63,716 bases of DNA, filler included, from Ministeria vibrans ATCC 50519 (GCA_943704425.1; 8 parts of 8 records of this genome joined end to end with filler, not necessarily neighbours in it), one strand, 5' to 3'; counted from the first letter of the whole stretch, positions 1-28,443 are shown. Translations and numbers: made by a program. Notes: generated from the sequence alone by a model not told the origin.

Positions 1-110
1 GTGCAGTCGTCCCGCCCGCTCGATCGCATCCATTGACATTTCCTTCACACACTTCTCCACTATCTTCCCAATCGTACCCAGCATCGACACCGAGCGCTGA
101 TTTCCCAAAA
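1..110 (-). mobile_element. Non-LTR retrotransposon RT fragment (N-terminal RT motif)
   Basis: Minus strand reads GNQRSVSMLGTIGKIVEKCVKEMSMDAIERAGRLH, matching the LINE RT motif NYRPISLL..xGKxxEK. It runs off the window start. Confidence 0.7.
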
Positions 111-136
111 ACCCTAATCCTAACCCTAACCCTAAA
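111..136 (+). repeat. Telomeric repeat tract (CCCTAA)n, about 4 units, one variant
   Basis: accctaatcctaaccctaaccctaaa. Confidence 0.85.
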
Positions 137-717
137 CCGTGCACATTGAGTTATCGTCGTCCAAGAACACTCCAAGGTGTCGCAGTGTGCGCACCACCCG
201 CATGTCGCACCTCCCTAAGCGCACTTTGCCGAGTCCCTTTTCAAACGACTCCACGTCGGACAGGCGCTCCTCGGCACAGCCAAGCGCCATGAGCGTTTTC
301 CGCGTCTCAGCACTAACTGCACGTTTTACACCTTGCGCGCCTTCGGCGATCTCCACACCATAGACATGCCTTGGCGCAACCATCATTGCTTCACATTTCG
401 CTTCGTTGACCTTAAGACCCACCGCGTCGGTGAAATCCCCCACAATCTTCGCCGCTCGATGCGCCTGCTCAACCGTTGCAACTGTCACTGCAATATCGTC
501 TACAAACGCAGACTGTGGGTCCAGCAATAGGCGATGGCGCGGTGAACAGGGCTGCTCGTCACTCAACGGAACAGCCTCATAAAGCACTCTCTCATACCGC
601 CTCACCACGAGCAGCGTTCTCATTCTGCGTCGCTCCCTCCATTGGCATGCGCAGCTCATCGAGTCTCATCACCATTCCATTGAGCACCGCCGCACACACC
701 AACAGGCCCAGCACCGG
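137..717 (-). mobile_element. Non-LTR retrotransposon RT core fragment (motifs 4-7), frameshifted and truncated at both ends
   Basis: GPVLGLLV (tail of QG..LGP.L), then after a frameshift SAFVDDIAV (YADD), GLKVNEAKC (GL..N..K) and LRHLGVFL (YLGV). The stop codon comes from the telomeric tract. Confidence 0.85.
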
Positions 718-744
718 CCCTAACCCTAACTCTAGCCCTAACCC
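718..744 (+). repeat. Degenerate telomeric repeat tract
   Basis: ccctaaccctaactctagccctaaccc. Confidence 0.8.
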
Positions 745-1264
745 GCAAGTCTCCATGTGAAAATATCGTTATGATGCGCAGCCGCCCCCTGACGTCACCA
801 ACGCAAACCACAGGTACCATCATGTTCCCCGCACCGAATGAGGAGGAAACGAGGAGGGGTCTGTCGAGATATGGCTTAGTTCTGCAGAAATACTCAATAA
901 ACTACGAAACAATGCCCCATTTTCGTGTTTTTGCAAGGGTATCTGTTTCTTAACTTCGATGGCTGTTATCTGAAAACCAAAGGCCTAGATAATTTTTGAA
1001 AGATACATTTTACATCTACTTTTTACGGGCTACAAAAATAAAGTAAGTTTGATGACGTCATAGCTTAACCCAAAGCCAAAGTACTATCACAACCCTTAAT
1101 ATGAATAAACATAATAACAACCAAAAACAAAACAAACACACACACATATTCTAATAACAAACCCACAAAAACAGAGACAAAAACAATAAAACAATCACAA
1201 CATACTCAGCAGGCCAATGTAACCCTAAACCTAGGCTCTCTGTCTTGAGGCGAGTGAAAACGGG

Positions 1265-2748
1265 TCAGGCGATCTCGTGACGCACGACGAGCACGGTGCA
1301 TGTGTTGCTGCCATGGGTAATTGAATCACCGACCACAATGACCGATGTGTCTGTCTTCACAGCGACACAGCGAGAAATTTCAGCTGTCACCGACACGTAT
1401 GCAATTGAGTCTGTCCCGGTCAGGGTGACTTTAGTGCCAACGCTTGTCGGTGCAAAAACAGCCGCATCGATGGAGCAGAAGTACGCATCCGTGGCAAGCT
1501 GTCAGAACAGGCGTGTTAAGAGAGAACGGAACTTCGGGCGGCCGCTTACCATGGAGCACTTTTGGCGATTCATAGTCGTAGCTGTAGATGCATTGGCAGC
1601 CACGACAGAAAAGGCTTGGCCAGTACAGTAAAGGTCGATATTGCAGCGCGAGAGGGTAGCGCTGCACTCGGGGTTTGTCGTGTCAATACGCGCATTGAGG
1701 ACGAGAGTTCTGGTCAATGTCGCCGTCACGGACGCAAACGTGACGCCACAGGCGGTCGTGGTCAAAAACGAGGAGAGGGCTGGAACCTCGTCGCTTGCTG
1801 CAACTTGACCCAAGAAGAACGCGCCAGAAGTCGGTTGTAGGTCGGGGATGTGAAACACAATGGCGACGTGTTCGCCACACAGCCTCGATACGGACTGTGG
1901 TAGAGAGAACGACACATAATTGCCCTGTGAAGTAATGGCAGCCTGCAGCTCTGCCAATGTCACTGTCGCCATGGCCAGTGTCTGGCCAATGTCCGACATG
2001 GTTGGGCTCCCGGTTGCTGGTGGAGTGTACTCGTTGACCGAAAGCGTGATTTCCAGACTCGGGTTCGAGCCAACGGTGAAAGTCTCGACGCCAAACTCGA
2101 TGTGTGTAATCGTCACTGCTGCTGTGCCCGAGTTGCCACTTGCGCTACACACGTCAAAGAGACGATAGAAGGTGTGCTCGGTAGTGAGCCCGCTGCTCGC
2201 ACACATAAGACCGTTAGCTTCAAAAGTAGAAAAGTCCACCGTGGAGCGCCCTGACATGACGGCTGTTGTGGCGCCGTAGCAGTTGGAGCCAGCCGACATA
2301 CACGGAGCCGGCGTGGCTGAGCACGCGCCAATGAAGTCACCGCACGTCTCACCTCCGTAGCCATCGGAGCAGACGCACATGGAGGTGCCCGAGCAGCTGG
2401 CTCCATGGGCGCACGTCATGGAACCGCACGTTACAGCTCGGCGGTGAACGGACTCGCCATGGTAGTGAGGATCAACAGCAAAGCTGAACTCGCATAGAGA
2501 ACCACCGGTTGCTGCCAGCAGAAAACCAATGGTCAGCAACGGCATCACACAAAAACGGCGAAACGTACCAGCTGGGCAGACGCAGATTTCAGAATCACAG
2601 GTCCCCCCGTTCAAGCAGCTGCACTCTGATGAGGTGGTCTGGGGAGAAGGGAGGTGGTAAGAGAAGAGAGGAAAACGCAACAGTGTATTATCGTTACCTG
2701 GCAAGAAACACAAGCGAAAACCGCGGCCAGAAGGAGAAAGCGGAGCAT
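1265..2748 (-). CDS. Secreted EGF-domain protein with an inserted bacterial-like beta domain (4 exons)
   Basis: Signal peptide MLRFLLLAAVFACVSCQ and GT-AG introns near 2697-2639, 2568-2515 and 1549-1499. EGF motifs CSCLNGGTCDSEICVC and CAHGASC...CVCSDGYGGETC. Last exon ends VVRHEIA*. Confidence 0.75.
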
Positions 2749-3779
2749 CTAGCTTGGGGAAGTCAGAAAGCATCAAAGAGCAACCCGTGTATATGTATGT
2801 GAGCACACAGACCCTCCTTGCCAACATGTGGAAGTGCACCCTGTCTCGATTGCAAGGACTACGGACGTCCTGACACGACGTCAAGGCCCCAGCCATCGCC
2901 GAGCATCACAAACAAACACAAACACAACTAAACACCACACATAACTTCTGGAACCATACGCCACTCGAAAATACAGCGATTTCATCTTTATCGTTATCTG
3001 CTCGTTATCTTTTTATATCTCAACATCTTATTTCAGCCATTACAGTCATCGCCGACCATCGCCGTCCCCATTCCCGTCAGGCCGTCACTCAACCACTGCC
3101 CACAACCCCGGTGAGCACACGGCACGCGAAAATACGCCGCCAATTTCGTTTGCGAGCGAAAGATCGGTTGCATGCCGTTTTTTTTCTTCGTCATGATGAG
3201 ACCGTAGGTCCCGCCCGCGCCACGCATCGCCGACCCCCGCAAACGGACACACACAACCCATGTATACATATGTGGCTTACTGTAGCGGTCGCAGTCGTGT
3301 AGAATTTCTTTCAGAGGGAAAAGACGGTATGAAAAAATTATGAAAATATTTAATGAATAATAAATTTATTATTCTGTTTTAATTTTTATTTTTCTGATCT
3401 CATCCTCGAAATATGATCTTTTATTTCGTCTTAATCGGGTCTTTAATACTGGGCTTAAGCCTATTTAATAGGCCCTCGGAATACTAGGTAAAGTATTTCA
3501 GTATTTTTTCATGAAAATACGTACTGAGGGCGGAGTGCGCCGGACTCGGTCCGAACTCTGTCCCACTCCGGTAATAACCAAAATCGATTTGGCCTGGGTA
3601 CCCTGGGTTGAGGAGCAAAAAAAAGCACTTTCCACCCTCATTGGAGGCCTCTACCTCATAACTCATTCATGTAGCCAACGGACGATAGACCCTTTTTAGG
3701 GTGACTTTAGACGTTCGAAATGTCAAAAAAAAAAACCTTTCAAGGGAACTTTCAAGTCGTGTTCGTTTTGACGAGATCA

Positions 3780-4107: not shown

Positions 4108-5030
4108 CTACAACGTGAAGCAGGGCAGCTCGGGCAAGCGCTCCTGAAGCACACGGGCAAACTCGGGATCACCACACGACTCAATGGTATCCACGAGCAG
4201 CCGACGTTGCCAGCGAGCGACTCGGGCCGCACGCATATCCTCTGCCGCCTCCATCACGTCCTCAAGCCGGGCAATATCATCCTCGTCACCCCGCTCCACG
4301 TCCTTGTCGTTCACAGTTTCCTCGCAACGACCACCACCCTGGTGCTGCCTCCGCTTTCTCCCTTCTCCACTGCCACCGCCACCCCCACCGCCATCATCCT
4401 CGACCTCCGAAATGGTCCCGAACGGACCCCGCAGCAAAGACGGCCGCGTCGGTGACGCCAGCCAGTCGTAGAGGGCTTTCTGGAGCTGCTCGGCGCACTT
4501 AAACCGGACCGTTCGCTGCACAAAGCGTTCTCTTCCCTCCATTGCCATCGTCACTTGAAAGAACAGTCGGGGTGTGTACAAAAAGGCGGCGCAGTCATAG
4601 TTGGAGACAAGGTTGGCGCAGACACACTCGCCCTGCACCTGAGGCAAGAACTCGCTGGGATTGGGCAAGTCAACCGCCTTGAGCTCGACGACGGCAACAA
4701 GGTCGGGCCGCGATGGCTCTATGAACCGCTCACCGTGGAGTGTGCGGTTGAAGGCGACGTCGGTGGTGCCGGACAGATGGAGCTGGGGCGCCGAGTCCGC
4801 GCCGAGAGTAGACAGCTCTTACCGGTAGCATCAAAGGGGCCGTTCCACGAAGGGTCACGCGGGATGATCTACACACACAGTATGACAGATAAGGAAAGAA
4901 AAAAGCTCACCTGAGCCTGCAAATGCTCGACAAACATCGGCTGCACGTTTCCTGCACGTCCTTCTCGACGACACCGTTGAAACAATAGGGGATGCCGAGA
5001 CCGCCCAGATCTGGATCGGCGTTCTCAAAG
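4108..5030 (-). pseudogene. Crinkler-like restriction-endonuclease-fold (PD-(D/E)xK) gene, probably disrupted
   Basis: LSGTTDV...VVELK...FLPQVQGECVCANL motif. Intron about 4911-4870; apparent frameshifts near 4950 (short acgtgcag duplication) and near 4800. Confidence 0.55.
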
Positions 5031-14506: not shown

Positions 14507-15794
14507 ATGAGCATTGAATGGTCCCCCCACAACCCTTCGGAGTTTGTGGTCGCTCACAATAACGAACTTCGTCTCTGTCAAACGGCCGCACACCCCCATG
14601 AGAGCCCCACAGGTAACAAATAAAACAGTCGTCGACATTCTCACTCTCTCTCTCTCTCACTCTCTCTCTCTTTCTCTCTCTCTCCTCTGCCTCTCTCGCC
14701 GCATGCTACTCCTCCACCACCCCCAGTCATTGCCGCCTGCAGCGACATCCCCACTCGAAAGTGCATGGCGTGGTGCCTGGAGCCGACGCCGCGGCCGCTG
14801 CTGGCTGTGGGAAACGCGACGGGGCAAGTGTCGCTGGCGACCATCACCGGCGCCCCCCACTCCTCCGTGAAGACCGCGCCGCCCCACCTTGTCCTGTATG
14901 CGCCCATCCAAGAGCGCATGTGCACCATGGTCGCTTGGAACCCCGCCGCGCCCAGCCGTGTTGCCGCCTCGTACGCCGGTGCGCACAAAAGCTCCAGCAA
15001 CACCTTCTCGCTTCTCCTGTGGGACGTGAGCACCGTCTCGTCGTCCGCACTCTCTCAACGCCCCGTCGTCGAGGCGGTCAAGGGCGACTTGGTCAAGTCC
15101 TTTGCTTGGTTCCGTCACCAGTCACATCAAATGGTGGTGGGCGGCGGCAACAACAAGTGGCTGCGCATCTTCGACTTTCGCTCCATCAACACCCGTCTCG
15201 GCTCGTCCGACACGACCGCCGTCCACGGCGTCTGCGTCGATCCTTTTGACGAAAACTTTGTGTCAGCTTTCTCCTCTGTCGAAAATGCCATTCACACGTA
15301 CGACATGCGTTCCCTCACCAAACCCGTGCTGACCTTTCCGCTCAACACGCCCACCGGCCCCTTCGTCAAACTCGCCTACTCACCACACACTCGCGGCTGC
15401 CTTGCTTCCCTGAGCACAAACGACAATCGTGTGCGCTTCTGGGACTTGCTCTATGGTTCGGTTCTCCAAGGACTCGCCATGTCCCGTGAACAAGAGGAAC
15501 TCCTCCAGCAAGGCCTGCACCTCCAAATGCAGCACGACGGCCAGCACCAGTCTCTTCGACTCGACCTCGACCCCAGTGCATCCTCCATCTCCGCTGCGGC
15601 ACAGCGTCTTGCCGCCTCACACAACGGCGCCACTGCCCATGTCGACCCAACCTCCTCCACTCCTGCGGGTGCCACAGCAGCAGCTGACTCTCTCCTGTCC
15701 GCGTCCACTCTTGCTACCACTGCGCGACACCACCATCCCACCGCTACCAGCAGTTCCCTTCCCGACAATTGTACCAGCAGTGCTACTGCTACTC

Positions 15795-15829
<35 letters not shown>

Positions 15830-18166
15830 GCGTCGTCCTCTGCCTCCGTCCCCGTAGCGTCGCCCTTTGTACCCTCTCGTTCCTCCGCCTCCGCAACCAC
15901 CCCCATGTCGACGTCGCAGCCTCTTCACCACGCTCTCCATTCGCAGCAAGAGCAGCACTTTAGCCACATGCTTCTGGGCTGTAGCTGGGGCGGCCGTCGT
16001 CCCGTCGACGTTGTCTCCTTCGACTGGCACCCCTCCCATCGCGACGGTATTGCCGCACTCGCCTCCGACGGGACTGTCAACGCCATTTGGCGCGCCCATC
16101 GCCCCCCTAGTCTTACCTGGTCCCCCGCCGACGGCGTCATCTTCACTCAGGGCGACTCTCTCGTGCACATCCCCGATATCCAACTCAACTACTCGTACAC
16201 CAGTCTCACCGGTGCACACCACAGCCAGACGCAGTCTCAGGCGCACGACAACAACACGCCCACCGCCCCGCCGCTCAAAGGTGCCGCCGCTGCCCTGGCA
16301 GCCGTCCTCTCCACACAGTCCGACCAACCCACTACCAGCCCTCGTGCACCCCTCCTTCACCAACCCCGCTCGGCTTCAAAGAGCACTTCCTCCTCCGCCC
16401 TGCCCGCCCCGCCTTCGTTTCCTCTCGCTTCCTCGACCCTGGCCACGACCAAGAACCGCCCGCCCATTGTGCACCTTGCTTCCGACGAGCTCACTTCCGT
16501 CCAAGAAGTGCTTGCCGACGATCTGTCCACCGTCATGAAGCAGCGTGCACTCGCTGGCTACGGCCTCAACGTGGAGCGCAACATTCGCGTGCCTTTTCTC
16601 ACGCCGAATTTGCAACAGACGTGGAAGTGGCTGCGCGACGTCTCCGTTCTCAAACTGCCCGCTGCCGTTGTCGAAATTCAGCAGCAGCAAGGCCAGAGCC
16701 AGCAGCGTGCGCTGCACAGCACCGACGGCGTCGCCGCTCTGCTCTCCGCGTCACCCTCCCCCTCCCAGTCCCTAGCCCCGTCCGCCCACAACGTTCTCGC
16801 TTTCCCCCGCTTTGCATCGCCCATGCGCTCACTTCTTGCACACGTCTGCGGTTGGACTTTTATCGATCACCCCAAGCGTGTCTTTGAGGCACACCTCTCG
16901 CGCCTCGAGCATCAAGGTCACTACGCCGAGGCTGCAACACTCGCGCTTTTTCAGCTTGACATGCCACGTGCCCTGCGTTCCCTTGCCGACGGCGCAACCA
17001 AACTACGTCGTGAGAACCTCCCCGACGAAGCCGACATGCTCGCCCTCATGCAATTGGCACTCTCCGGCTTTGTCAATGCAGCCGCACGCGAAGAACTCGA
17101 TCAGCAGCAGCAACAACAGCCGTCGCCACCTCAACCCAAGGGCACAACATCGCACAAGAAGACCAAAAAGGTCCATCCGACGGCAACGTCCATCTGGGCG
17201 GATTCGGTCGCCCACGTCTGCTCCACCGTGCGCGACCCCCATCTGCGAGCGGCTCTTGGGTTCCTGAGCGACCGTGCAGTCGACTCCTCAACGCGCTCGT
17301 ATCGTCTGGTTACGCGTGAGCGCGCTCTGCCTCTTAGCGACCGCATTGCCTTTGCCAGCGTATTCCTCAGCGATTCGTCTCTCTCCATGTTTGTGCGTGA
17401 GCTTGTACACGAAGTGGTTGGTGCAGGCGACCTCAAGGGCATTCTGGTGACGGGGCTGGGTGAGCATCTGGGAGATCTGCTGCAGCGCTACGTGGACCGC
17501 ACAGGCGATTGCCAGACGGCAAGTCTGCTTGTCAGTCTGCGCGAGGTCACGCCCACCGCGCGCGCCGCTCAGTGGGTCTCCACCTACCGCGACCTGCTTG
17601 ACACTTGGCAACTGTGGCACGTGCGCGCTCAGTTTGACATTGCTCGCCGTCGATGTGCCCTCACGCCTCTCACTCGGCCCTCTCCGCAGGTCTTTGTCAA
17701 ATGCAACTTCTGTGGTACCAGCATTACCGCCGTGAGCGCTCCCAAACGCAAGGCAGGTGGACCAGCAGGGCCCAGTAGTGCTGGCGGTGGTGCGCATGGG
17801 GCGGGACCCGCTGTGCGCTCCAACGCCGGTCCGCCAACGGGTGCATCTCTGTCGGCCTGCCGTGGATGCAAGCAAACGGTACCCCGTTGCTCGGTGTGCC
17901 TAATGTTGCTGGGCACGAGCAGTCGGGCGCCCGAGAAGCCTGCTGGCGGCGAGGGTGAAACGGCCGTCGAGAGCGACGAGCACCAGCAAAAGCGCCCGTA
18001 TGCGTCGCTCGAGCGCTGGTTTGCCTGGTGTCAGTCGTGTCGTCACGGAGGCCACGCAGGCCACCTGTCCGAGTGGTTCGCCTCACACTCAGTGTGCCCT
18101 GTTGCAAGCTGCCGTTGCTGCTGTCGCATCGCCAGTCTTGGTGTGGCCACTGCCACTTCCGAGTGA
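14507..18166 (+). CDS. MIOS: GATOR2 subunit MIOS (Mio/Sea4)
   Basis: IEWSPH, SDIPTRKCMAW..LLAVGNATGQV WD40 start, YVDRTGDCQTA, and C-terminal CNFC...PRCSVC...WFAWCQSCRHGGHAGH zinc region. One intron about 14613-14726. Confidence 0.95.
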
Positions 18167-19415: not shown

Positions 19416-21495
19416 ATGACGACGCTGACGATCTCCTTTGGCTCTGATGTTAGTCATGTACAGTTTATGCTCACGAGAGAAAGCATTGCAGAGCGCGAAC
19501 CGGACTCGATACTGCTCGACGGCGATGCCAACACGCTCTGCTACGATCGGGATCCGCAGTTGTTTGCAGCGCTCTACTTGTACCTCCGCTCTGCCTCGGT
19601 GCCCCTCTCAGAGTCGTCGCACCATCTTGACAACCTCATCAAAGGTGTGTATGTTACTTGCGTGTGGTGTCCTTGTCTGACTTGCACTCCTCCTTTCGCC
19701 TTCGTCGTCCGAAGAAGCCGAGTTCTTCAACATGCGCGTGCTCGCACGCCAGCTCGAGGCACAGCGCCCGGCGCTCACACACATCAGCAACGCCCAACTG
19801 CTGGAGCACATTATGACGTGTCCTATTACAAGACTGCCCAGCTGTGACCTGCGCGCCCTCAAACTCACTTACTTCCGCTTTGGTGACCATTCACAGATGC
19901 CCCTGTGCATTTTCAGTGGCATGGATTTGCGCGGTGTCACTTTGCGCAAATGTTCGCTCCGTGGCGCACGTCTGGACCGCTGTCGTTTGGAAGACGCCTC
20001 ATTTGTCGAGTGTGATCTTCGCGAAGTTCACCTTGAGCACAGTGTGTGTGACGGTGTCAACTTGACTGACTCAACGCTGGATTGCGCTCGCGCGTCATTT
20101 GTCTCCTTCAAACGCGCGACGCTTGATCGCGCGTCGTTTGCGTCGGCCACTTTGAAAGGTGCTTCTTTCGTGGACGCCACTGTGCACAATGCCAATTTCA
20201 CGGATGCTATGCTAGTGTCGAGTATCTGCTCGGCCTCCGACATGGTGGGCAGTCGGTTCGGGGGAGCCGCTCTTGACAACGTGCTCTTTCACCAAACACT
20301 CCTGGACGGGTGCCAGTTCAGCGACACTACCGCACTGGTCGGCGCCGATTTCTTTCATGCATCGCTTTCCCTGGCTACTCTTCCTCTTGATCTGACAACC
20401 GCCAAGCGCTGGTCCGCATCATCTTTTGTCGGAACGTGTCTCCGCGAGCGAAACTGCCAAGGCTGCAATTTTGACGACGCCGACTTTACTGGCGCCGATC
20501 TCACCGAGGCGCGTCTTGGTGAATGTACCCTCACTGGAGCTGTGTTTACCAATGCTGTGCTTGAACGCGCCCTGTTGCCATCTGGTGATGCCCTGGCCAA
20601 AGCGGTAGCATGGACAGGTGCAGTACTTCGCGAATGTGACCTCTCGCGCGTGTCGCTTGCCGAATGCGACATGTCGCACGCAGACTTTTCAAATGCACGC
20701 TTTAGCAATATTGACGACGCGTGCACATGCAACATTGAGCGTACAACGTTTGCTTACGCCATCTTTTGCAACGCTCGCATGCCATTGTCGCTTGCCCCAG
20801 CCGCCTCTTGGGTGCATGCTCAGTTGGCGCATGTTGACCTGAGCAGCCGCGATCTCGCCCACTGTGCGCTCGCCGGAGCACATCTCCAGTGTGCCAACCT
20901 CTTCAATGCGAACATAACAGCGACAGATTTTACCGACGCCAATGTCTCGCAGGCCATCCTGCCGCTTGATTTGTCTCCAGCACAATCGTGGCTCCGCGCC
21001 ACCTTTGACAAGTGTGACTTGACGGGACGCCTCCTGAACGCGATCGATTTTTCACACGCGAGTTTTACAGGTGCCACACTCACACTCGCCTCGGTGGACC
21101 AGGCTACCTTTTTCCAAGCTCGATTTGACACTGCCATCCTTCCGATGGACATGAGCGCAGCGAAGACATGGCAGGGCGCCTCCTTGCGCGCCACCGTGCT
21201 CATCGGTCGCAACCTGTCCCATTGCAACCTGATTGGCGCCGATCTAAGCGACGCTGATCTCACATACGCCATTCTTACAGACTGTTGCATGCGTGACGCC
21301 TGTTTGGACGGTGTGCGCCCGCCATACGCTGTGCCTTGTGTGTGGTGCAAGCGAAACGGCGTCCACCACAAGTACGCCTTGGACACTCTCAAGGCGTCGG
21401 GTACGCCTCGCCATGTCGTCCACGGCTGTCTCTACGGAGCCTGTGAAAAGCACAAAGGGAACACCTTCTTTGGCTACTCTCGAGTCCTTGAGTGA
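19416..21495 (+). CDS. BTB/POZ (T1-type) plus pentapeptide-repeat protein (KCTD9-like)
   Basis: DRDPQLF..LY.YLR...EAEFF BTB motif, then long A(D/N)LxxA-type pentapeptide repeats; one intron. Confidence 0.85.
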
Positions 21496-28258: not shown

Positions 28259-28345
28259 GTGAGTGATTTAGTAATCATGTGAATGTATGTGTGTGTGTAT
28301 GTTTATGTATGTGTGCGTGTATGTATGTGTGTGTGTTTGTGTGTT

Positions 28346-28443
<98 letters not shown>

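Follow-up and report, generated by a model that had tools for sequence, protein, structure and literature searches.

The window, a stretch of 63,716 nucleotides of DNA from Ministeria vibrans including filler, carries two telomeric tracts and two fragments of reverse transcriptase (RT) coding sequence at its left end, and the minus strand is the G-rich strand (Table 1). This strand runs toward the left end of the contig, as expected for a left chromosome end, and along it unique DNA (...acttgc) is followed by a first telomeric tract (744-718), an RT fragment designated piece A, a second telomeric tract (137-110) and a second RT fragment designated piece B. Repeat finding and translation thereby confirmed the order that a sequence-only reading of this DNA had described, namely a tract, RT motifs 4-7, a further tract and an earlier RT motif. 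Tandem Repeats Finder reported two arrays of the CCCTAA type, one of 4.3 copies at 110-135 (90% matches) and one of 4.5 copies at 718-744 (80%). Both are the only runs of at least two CCCTAA/TTAGGG units within the 28.4 kb covered, and the chance expectation for a given 12-mer is about 0.003 by our own arithmetic. The proximal tract contains two variant positions in 27 nt, which would fit the age suggested below for piece A. Host genes nearly reach the telomere, as an open reading frame for an EGF-like cysteine-rich protein lies about 760 bp from the first tract. The host assembly is gene-dense and comprises 29.7 Mb in 2860 contigs; a search of the genome for light-harvesting-complex genes found none, a result that carries a caveat on its control. 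With introns present and light-harvesting genes missing, a kinetoplastid and a photosynthetic alga were both rejected as hosts. The contig is also not of human origin; its genes (Table 1) are of ordinary eukaryotic kinds, and exact look-ups of two proteins encoded in the window gave no match. Proximal to pieces A and B, a further stretch resembles the 3' UTR of the element described below (72% identity over 152 nt, obtained with lenient scoring in low-complexity sequence). It may represent a much older, decayed insertion and is regarded as a lead.

Table 1. Features at the left end and elsewhere in the window, and related sites in the same genome. Positions without a contig or locus name refer to the window.
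Feature	Position	Strand	Remarks
Piece B, second 5'-truncated copy of the same LINE	1..109	-	element coordinates 1191-1299, early RT motif
Second telomeric tract	110..137	-	gt-TTAGGG-TTAGGG-TTAGGA-TTAGGG-TT; caps the truncated 3' side of piece A
Piece A, internal fragment of a telomere-targeting LINE	138..717	-	RT motifs 4-7, element coordinates ~1634-2214
Proximal telomeric tract	718..744	-	GGG-TTAGGG-CTAGAG-TTAGGG-TTAGGG; directly abuts unique DNA (...acttgc)
Possible much older LINE relic	1060..1235	-	TTTAGGGTTA, then a GT-rich stretch, weakly like the element 3' UTR
EGF-like cysteine-rich ORF	1502-2896	-	
MIOS/GATOR2 homologue	14765-18163	+	single 1133-aa frame
Pentapeptide-repeat protein	19732-21492	+	587 aa
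(TG)n run	28284-28443		right end of the piece
Subtelomeric unit of ~480 bp	L054 (C2371:117293-120044); L028 (C2565)		
GTTC-TTAGGG tract-start examples	L047:1848-1870; L071:1860-1915; L089:1470-1490		
Candidate telomerase RNA template sites	C1579:16068-16082; C2426:8166-8180		template sequence outside a longer C-strand repeat
RVT_1 matches, among them other LINE families	C2515:3400-4155; C2581:227-1036; C2679:15043-15681; C1645:3524-5968		
Second element with the LINE 3' tail	L054:2263-2645; L033:919-1267; L107		

Translation of the minus strand of piece A (716-138) gives GPVLGLLV...FVDD...GLKVNEAKCE...LRHLGVFLDDD, which matches Pfam RVT_1 with an E-value of 1.5e-6 and 28.5 bits, just below the cut-off of 29.6 bits, and piece B (109-1) encodes ...SMLGTIGKIVEKCV..., an earlier RT motif. 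When mapped onto the tiling frame of the element, piece A corresponds to ~1634-2214 and piece B to 1191-1299, and the pieces are therefore out of their native order. Neither end of the element is present in piece A, from which at least 1.6 kb is missing on the 5' side and about 3.0 kb on the 3' side. Mapping to natural copies thereby substantiated two earlier statements, the non-native order of the pieces and the loss of both element ends from piece A. Piece A is 94.7% identical to the copy on contig C1813 and 96.4% identical to that on C1787, which extends beyond the break point of piece A, and it carries a frameshift near 620-660 and is therefore a dead copy. Piece B is 100% identical to the copy on C2679 and runs off the end of the contig, which breaks inside the repeat.

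The junctions of the two pieces differ in their relation to the telomeric repeat. At the 5' junction of piece A, the tract overlaps the parent sequence by GGG, or by GGGT if position 717 represents a later T-to-C change; this position may be either a filler base or a mutated base. The 3' break of piece A lies after ...gtgcacg, where the parent continues with caagttg, and is followed by gt and then by TTAGGG, with at most 1 nt of homology. This junction (...cacg-gt-TTAGGG) is an exact fit to neither of the two common tract-start signatures described below. Piece B starts exactly at TTTGGGAAATC with a microhomology of 0 (parent upstream ...AATGA). The junctions accordingly agree only in part with the statement that each of them overlaps telomere-like sequence. 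In addition, the reading LGPVL across the 5' junction turned out to be coincidental, as the parent encodes GSVLGPLV. Both tracts beside piece A are degenerate.

When the genome from which the window derives was searched at the DNA and protein level, the same LINE was found at many contig ends. The coordinate frame of the element spans at least 5252 nt and was obtained by tiling natural copies that overlap one another (on C2679, C1813, C1787, C1131, C277, C100, C2693 and C1583), not by building a consensus. Its reading frame extends over at least about 1590 aa and comprises 330 aa, the RT, a linker, an RNase H-like domain (...VTDASF...TDN...HVTD...NERADGIARGG) and a CCHC knuckle; the 3' UTR of ~475 nt ends with ...AAGTTCATGTCTCGG and is devoid of poly(A), and the constant 3' end of the element reads ...CATGTCTCGG. 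For the 330 aa upstream of the RT, no Pfam match was obtained in the one copy reaching that far, and an Atlas search with this N-terminal region matched only unnamed clusters. The RT is of the LINE type, its best match among solved structures being LINE-1 ORF2p (E 1.3e-4). A 534-aa RT-bearing fragment gave no match in a word-indexed protein search, and the best match to the RT in an exhaustive search of 1.84 billion representative proteins had 28% identity (E 4e-14), with no closer relative detected in this set. The relatives recovered are LINE proteins that contain RVT_1 and in several cases an Exo_endo_phos (apurinic-type endonuclease) domain as well, and the nearest named ones are arthropod R1-type elements with an identity of only about 25%. 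An RNase H-like domain seems atypical for R1.

At its other end, the element probably begins with the constant start TCAGTTTTATTC..., which directly follows TTAGGG tracts in at least 14 loci (L098 (C2288:1-1700), L094, L096, L097, L099 and others) and opens an ORF1-like frame for which no Pfam match was found. No assembled contig joins this candidate full-length 5' end to the RT part: a walk from the 5' part toward the RT part fails because the sole contig with that stretch, C2288, ends there. As to the proposed genome-wide collection of TTAGGG-adjacent sequence, segmentation of 56 contig regions of the 29.7 Mb genome gave 81 element pieces. The proposed rebuilding of the element stopped short of a full-length copy, as the assembly lacks the sequence that would connect the ORF1-like 5' part with the RT. 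No endonuclease domain was found in the assembled element parts, from which the middle of the element is missing. For PF14529, the whole assembly yielded a single weak sub-threshold match of 20 bits on C1435, and in our own reading of the translations the C-terminus contained the RNase H-like and CCHC motifs and no recognisable restriction-like nuclease. RVT_1 matches number only about ten in the whole genome, including other LINE families (Table 1), and the LINE on C1645 possesses an Exo_endo_phos domain upstream of its RT.

The genome-wide segmentation revealed a regular anatomy of the arrays. All element pieces but one (80/81) adjoin TTAGGG tracts in one orientation, the sense strand coinciding with the G strand. 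Canonical 3' ends were found 22 times, and in 18 of these TTAGGG follows directly in the same phase (...CTCGG/TTAGGG). More than 40 distinct start points occur after TTAGGG tracts on the 5' side, and the copy number increases from 5' to 3', the number of matches being 6 in the RT region, 24 in the RNase H/zinc-knuckle region and no fewer than 48 in the 3' UTR. The tract ends exactly with ...GGGTT in half of the filler-free 5' junctions (15/30, p = 2.6e-5), and microhomology, which ranges from 0 to 4 nt, amounts to at least 1 nt in 19 of the 26 scorable ones (p = 4e-7). TSDs of 13-15 bp, each at GGG^TT(AG), flank copies on C713, C1788, C1856 and C2390; these were scored on interstitial copies, since TSDs are not scorable for copies inside telomeric repeats. 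Within adjacent pairs, the distal piece is closer to the reference copies in 19 of 22 cases (p = 9e-4), identity to the chosen reference copies being only a rough proxy for age. On C1583, C2145 and C2326, the contig terminates in 72-145 nt of TTAGGG located after the element 3' end, and the copy-bearing contig C2693 ends in 94 nt of TTAGGG; all of these ends look like true termini. The telomeric tracts have a median length of 24 nt, which is partly an ascertainment effect as internal tracts longer than ~75 nt are not assemblable.

We consider it probable that the left end of the window represents a subterminal array of a site-specific, TTAGGG-targeting non-LTR (LINE-type) retrotransposon that was later cut back and re-capped. 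The constant 3' end and its phase, the variable 5' starts, the phase of the 5' junctions, the TSDs and the orientation argue that the copies arose by ordinary target-primed reverse transcription, with staggered nicks made within duplex telomeric repeats and with the orientation known from SART1. The element RNA would be transcribed toward the chromosome end and read into the telomeric repeats. Nicking of the C-rich strand at GGG^TTAG would then prime reverse transcription from the fixed 3' end (...CATGTCTC-GG), the second strand would be cut ~14-15 nt downstream, and the cDNA, often incomplete, would be joined at its 5' end to ...GGGTT(A) via 0-4 nt of microhomology. From the position of the first nick and the distance to the second one, the ...GGGTT(A) phase is predicted, as seen at the 5' junctions, and microhomology of 1-4 nt at such junctions is a usual feature of 5'-truncated LINE insertions. 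The absence of poly(A) and the direct ...CGG/TTAGGG junction suggest a template RNA that continues into the distal repeats and pairs with the nicked C strand. The resulting picture corresponds to the arrays, in which copies are bounded on both sides by TTAGGG tracts, their sense sequence lies on the G strand and new copies are distal to old ones. The nicking enzyme is a postulated component of this model, given the lack of an endonuclease domain in the assembled parts. A wider reading, which we regard as unlikely, is that the element possesses no endonuclease and uses natural C-strand 3'-OH ends, so that telomerase and the LINE would jointly build and repair nearly every chromosome end and GTTC-TTAGGG would mark healing genome-wide; the 3'-OH ends may then be provided by lagging-strand or fill-in intermediates or by R-loops of the element's own TERRA-like read-through RNA.

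The sequence-only reading had instead proposed that the chromosome 3' end was repeatedly extended by microhomology-primed copying of retroelement sequence and re-capped by telomerase. In such a model, the 3' end of the G strand would anneal by microhomology to retroelement RNA or to free antisense cDNA and be extended independently of an endonuclease, re-capping would follow, and the cycle would be repeated. Endonuclease-independent L1 insertion occurs at uncapped telomeres, and both the microhomology at most scorable 5' junctions and the missing endonuclease domain in the assembled parts would be compatible with such an extension; free antisense cDNA starting with CCCTAA repeats would give the orientation seen as well as a telomeric distal cap. 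With an RNA template, however, the G strand would be antisense, yet almost all pieces are sense on this strand, which excludes simple priming of the G-strand 3' end on element RNA. Furthermore, TSDs of 13-15 bp at GGG^TT require that duplex DNA be nicked in a staggered manner, the 3' junction varies neither in position nor in phase, the 5' junctions favour a phase of their own, and piece B was joined without any microhomology. Microhomology-primed copying onto the chromosome 3' end therefore appears quite improbable. What stands of the proposed repeated extension is its succession of steps and, plausibly, the re-capping. Since the same layering is present at dozens of contig ends and represents a known kind of telomere architecture, a new mechanism of end healing, as had been envisaged, was likewise not borne out. 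Two further candidates were rejected: an end-primed terminal retroelement in the orientation of HeT-A/TART, Athena or MoTeR, as the orientation is opposite in 80 of the 81 pieces, and interstitial telomeric sequence arising from break repair, as the flanks of the tract at 110-137 are non-contiguous in the element (2214 and 1191).

Under the favoured reading of target-primed insertion, the history of the left end would comprise four steps. Copy A would have been inserted into the original telomere, the chromosome end would have been cut back into A to a point ~3 kb short of its 3' end, new TTAGGG repeats would have been added, most likely by telomerase, and, after ~5% divergence, copy B would have been inserted into the new tract. 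The difference in identity between piece A (94.7%) and piece B (100%), the degenerate tracts beside A and the gradient across adjacent pairs argue for a stepwise distal growth of the array, and indicate that piece A is the older and piece B the younger of the two. The notion of a telomere/retroelement mosaic at an apparent chromosome end with the older piece in the proximal position was thus upheld. Piece A was most likely cut back and re-capped, and telomerase is the best reading for the re-capping agent rather than a proven one, as telomerase healing is indistinguishable from an internal deletion joining A to a distal tract. A search for TERT, suggested along with the sequence-only reading, found the gene in the genome, with an apparently intact exon for the RNA-binding domain.

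Other 3'-truncated pieces capped by TTAGGG occur at about eight loci (C1735 (two), C2249, C1168, C1813, C1167, C1856 and C2326). Two tract-start signatures are common to junctions between unique DNA and telomere and to truncated pieces, N/GGGTTAGGG, which by chance is extended to AGGG or TAGGG, and GTTC/TTAGGG. In three cases with a known parent (C1856, C1168 and C1167), GTT derives from the parent and the added sequence opens with C-TTAGGG. The 14-mer GTTCTTAGGGTTAG (motif GTTC-TTAGGGTTAG) is present 25 times in the genome, compared to 0 for a reversed control. The recurrence of GTTC-TTAGGG starts (examples in Table 1) suggests synthesis on a fixed telomerase RNA template, 5'-CUAACCCUAAGAAC. 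A preceding C is absent from just two copies of CTAACCCTAAGAAC, which hence lie outside longer C-strand arrays; these are the candidate template sites in Table 1.

The state of the window could also be explained without any healing, if a complete copy A with its tract had suffered an internal deletion, by tract breakage and end joining or by replication slippage, that removed the 3' 3 kb. Interstitial TTAGGG tracts of at least three repeats are break-prone in MoTeR arrays and yield deletions and relics (PMC7367193), and the ...cacg-gt-TTAGGG junction of piece A, matching neither common telomere-start signature, would agree with this. The GTT supplied by the parent at the three loci above and the excess of GTTC-TTAGGGTTAG over the reversed control point to templated addition rather than to random joins, although at other loci and not at the window junction, and a loss by deletion alone appears doubtful to us. 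Very improbable is an origin of the whole arrangement in a single event, in which one run of reverse transcription switched between element RNAs and telomeric-repeat RNA or DNA and gave rise to a chimeric B-tract-A cDNA. Direct piece-to-piece chimeras without telomeric repeats do occur, on C2679 (element 4198 joined to position 1), C1887, C1262 and C1856, and the 5' junction on C1982 contains a 16-nt filler originating elsewhere in the element, from which it follows that the RT does switch templates. The ages of A and B, however, differ sharply as judged by their identities and by the degeneration of the tracts beside A, and the gradient of identity from proximal to distal pieces argues for successive events. 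Misjoined short reads of telomeric and retroelement repeats are an extremely unlikely source of the arrangement. The contig does end inside a repeat of 100% identity, the assembly is fragmented and some related loci border scaffold gaps, but private variants in piece A and in both tracts make the path unique, more than 50 regions share this architecture while differing in their junctions, and neither the regular phase nor the orientation or the age gradient would be expected from random chimeras.

Comparison with known systems places the element closest to SART1 and MoTeR in different respects. SART1 of Bombyx mori inserts with its sense strand on the G-rich strand, starting from a C-strand nick, requires a minimum of three repeats and can use short telomere-like sites elsewhere (PMC7265360). 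As in SART1 and TRAS1 (R1 clade), insertion takes place inside duplex telomeric repeats at a fixed nucleotide and in fixed orientation, and 5'-truncated copies are stacked between short telomeric tracts; the position of the sense strand on the G-rich strand is that of SART1. In contrast to both, it is TTAGGG and not TTAGG that is targeted, the 3' end lacks a poly(A) tail and is joined immediately to the repeat, the RT is succeeded by an RNase H-like domain and a CCHC knuckle and is at most 28% identical to anything known, the assembled parts lack an endonuclease domain, and the host possesses TERT and TTAGGG runs of up to 145 nt at contig ends. MoTeR1/2 (Pyricularia/Magnaporthe oryzae) and the FoTeRs (Fusarium) similarly form LINE arrays split by short interstitial TTAGGG tracts, with re-capped truncated copies, internalised relics and highly dynamic ends (PMC7367193; PMC12857005). 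In MoTeR arrays, truncation is followed by de novo telomere addition, and deletion is an outcome as well; the MoTeR 5' end is always nearest to the chromosome end and erosion removes 5' sequence (PMC7367193), whereas in M. vibrans the 3' end is distal and the 3' side is eroded. The RT of the present element is nearest to LINEs with an apurinic-type endonuclease. LINEs of the CRE clade, by contrast, carry a restriction-like endonuclease. MoTeR1 belongs to this clade (PMC10088271).

HeT-A/TART/TAHRE of Drosophila and Athena-type elements are likewise part of the chromosome end, with distal growth and erosion. HeT-A/TART/TAHRE and the endonuclease-lacking Athena elements attach their 3' end to the free chromosome end, so that the 3' end is proximal. 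The orientation in M. vibrans is opposite, the TSDs indicate insertion into duplex DNA, and the RT is of the LINE type and not of the Penelope type as in Athena-type endonuclease-lacking Penelope-like elements (PMC8557442). Further telomere-associated LINEs are Zepp (Chlorella), GilM/GilT (Giardia) and Tx1-1_ACar (anole) (PMC10088271); these resemble the present element as LINEs in or near telomerase-made repeats of non-insect hosts. Telomere-specific LINEs are known from few lineages: insects, a few fungi, Giardia, Chlorella and an anole lizard (PMC10088271). The element of M. vibrans is a new, previously undescribed and very divergent member of this known class of telomeric-repeat-specific LINEs, with an orientation matching SART1 and array dynamics resembling MoTeR. 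This family is present at dozens of contig ends (56 contig regions examined) of a host that retains telomerase, and thereby offers a natural case of a retrotransposon and telomerase operating side by side. Its age-ordered, layered arrays would preserve the traces of insertion, terminal loss and re-capping in repeated cycles. In addition, the frequent GTTC-TTAGGG start may point directly to the telomerase RNA template and, if true, de novo telomere addition in this organism becomes testable.

Several arrangements outside the window were observed in addition. On C2679 (L052/L008, C2679:1583-1590), an RNase H-region fragment ending at 4198 is joined at ...cataATG/GAAATT... to the most 5' part of the RT-bearing frame; this joint looks like a template-switch chimera, and the apparent start codon at this position is therefore unreliable. 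On C1494 (L005, L099), a telomere/LINE mosaic is separated from a second TTAGGG tract, which carries a full-length 5' end, by ~6 kb of apparently non-element sequence; the minor part read of these 6 kb starts with an apparent host gene. On C1443 (L097), a 5' fragment of ~430 nt is joined to a protein-kinase-like gene, and the arrangements on C1494 and C1443 appear to be internalised relics. Inverted junctions are rare: a sense element piece meets (CCCTAA)4 head-on in L046 (C2059:1-140), and inverted element pieces lie beside a C-strand tract in L049 (C2290). Both could be end-to-end fusions or assembly chimeras. A subtelomeric unit of ~480 bp (ataatagaatgaagcc...gacgtagac) alternates in tandem with TTAGGG tracts and LINE tails. 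Finally, the similarity of a second element to the LINE is limited to the last ~80 nt of the LINE 3' end (...gagtgggcc.cataagctgc...catgtctcgg), and its upstream part is unrelated; this second element may be a non-autonomous partner that borrows the 3' recognition tail of the LINE.
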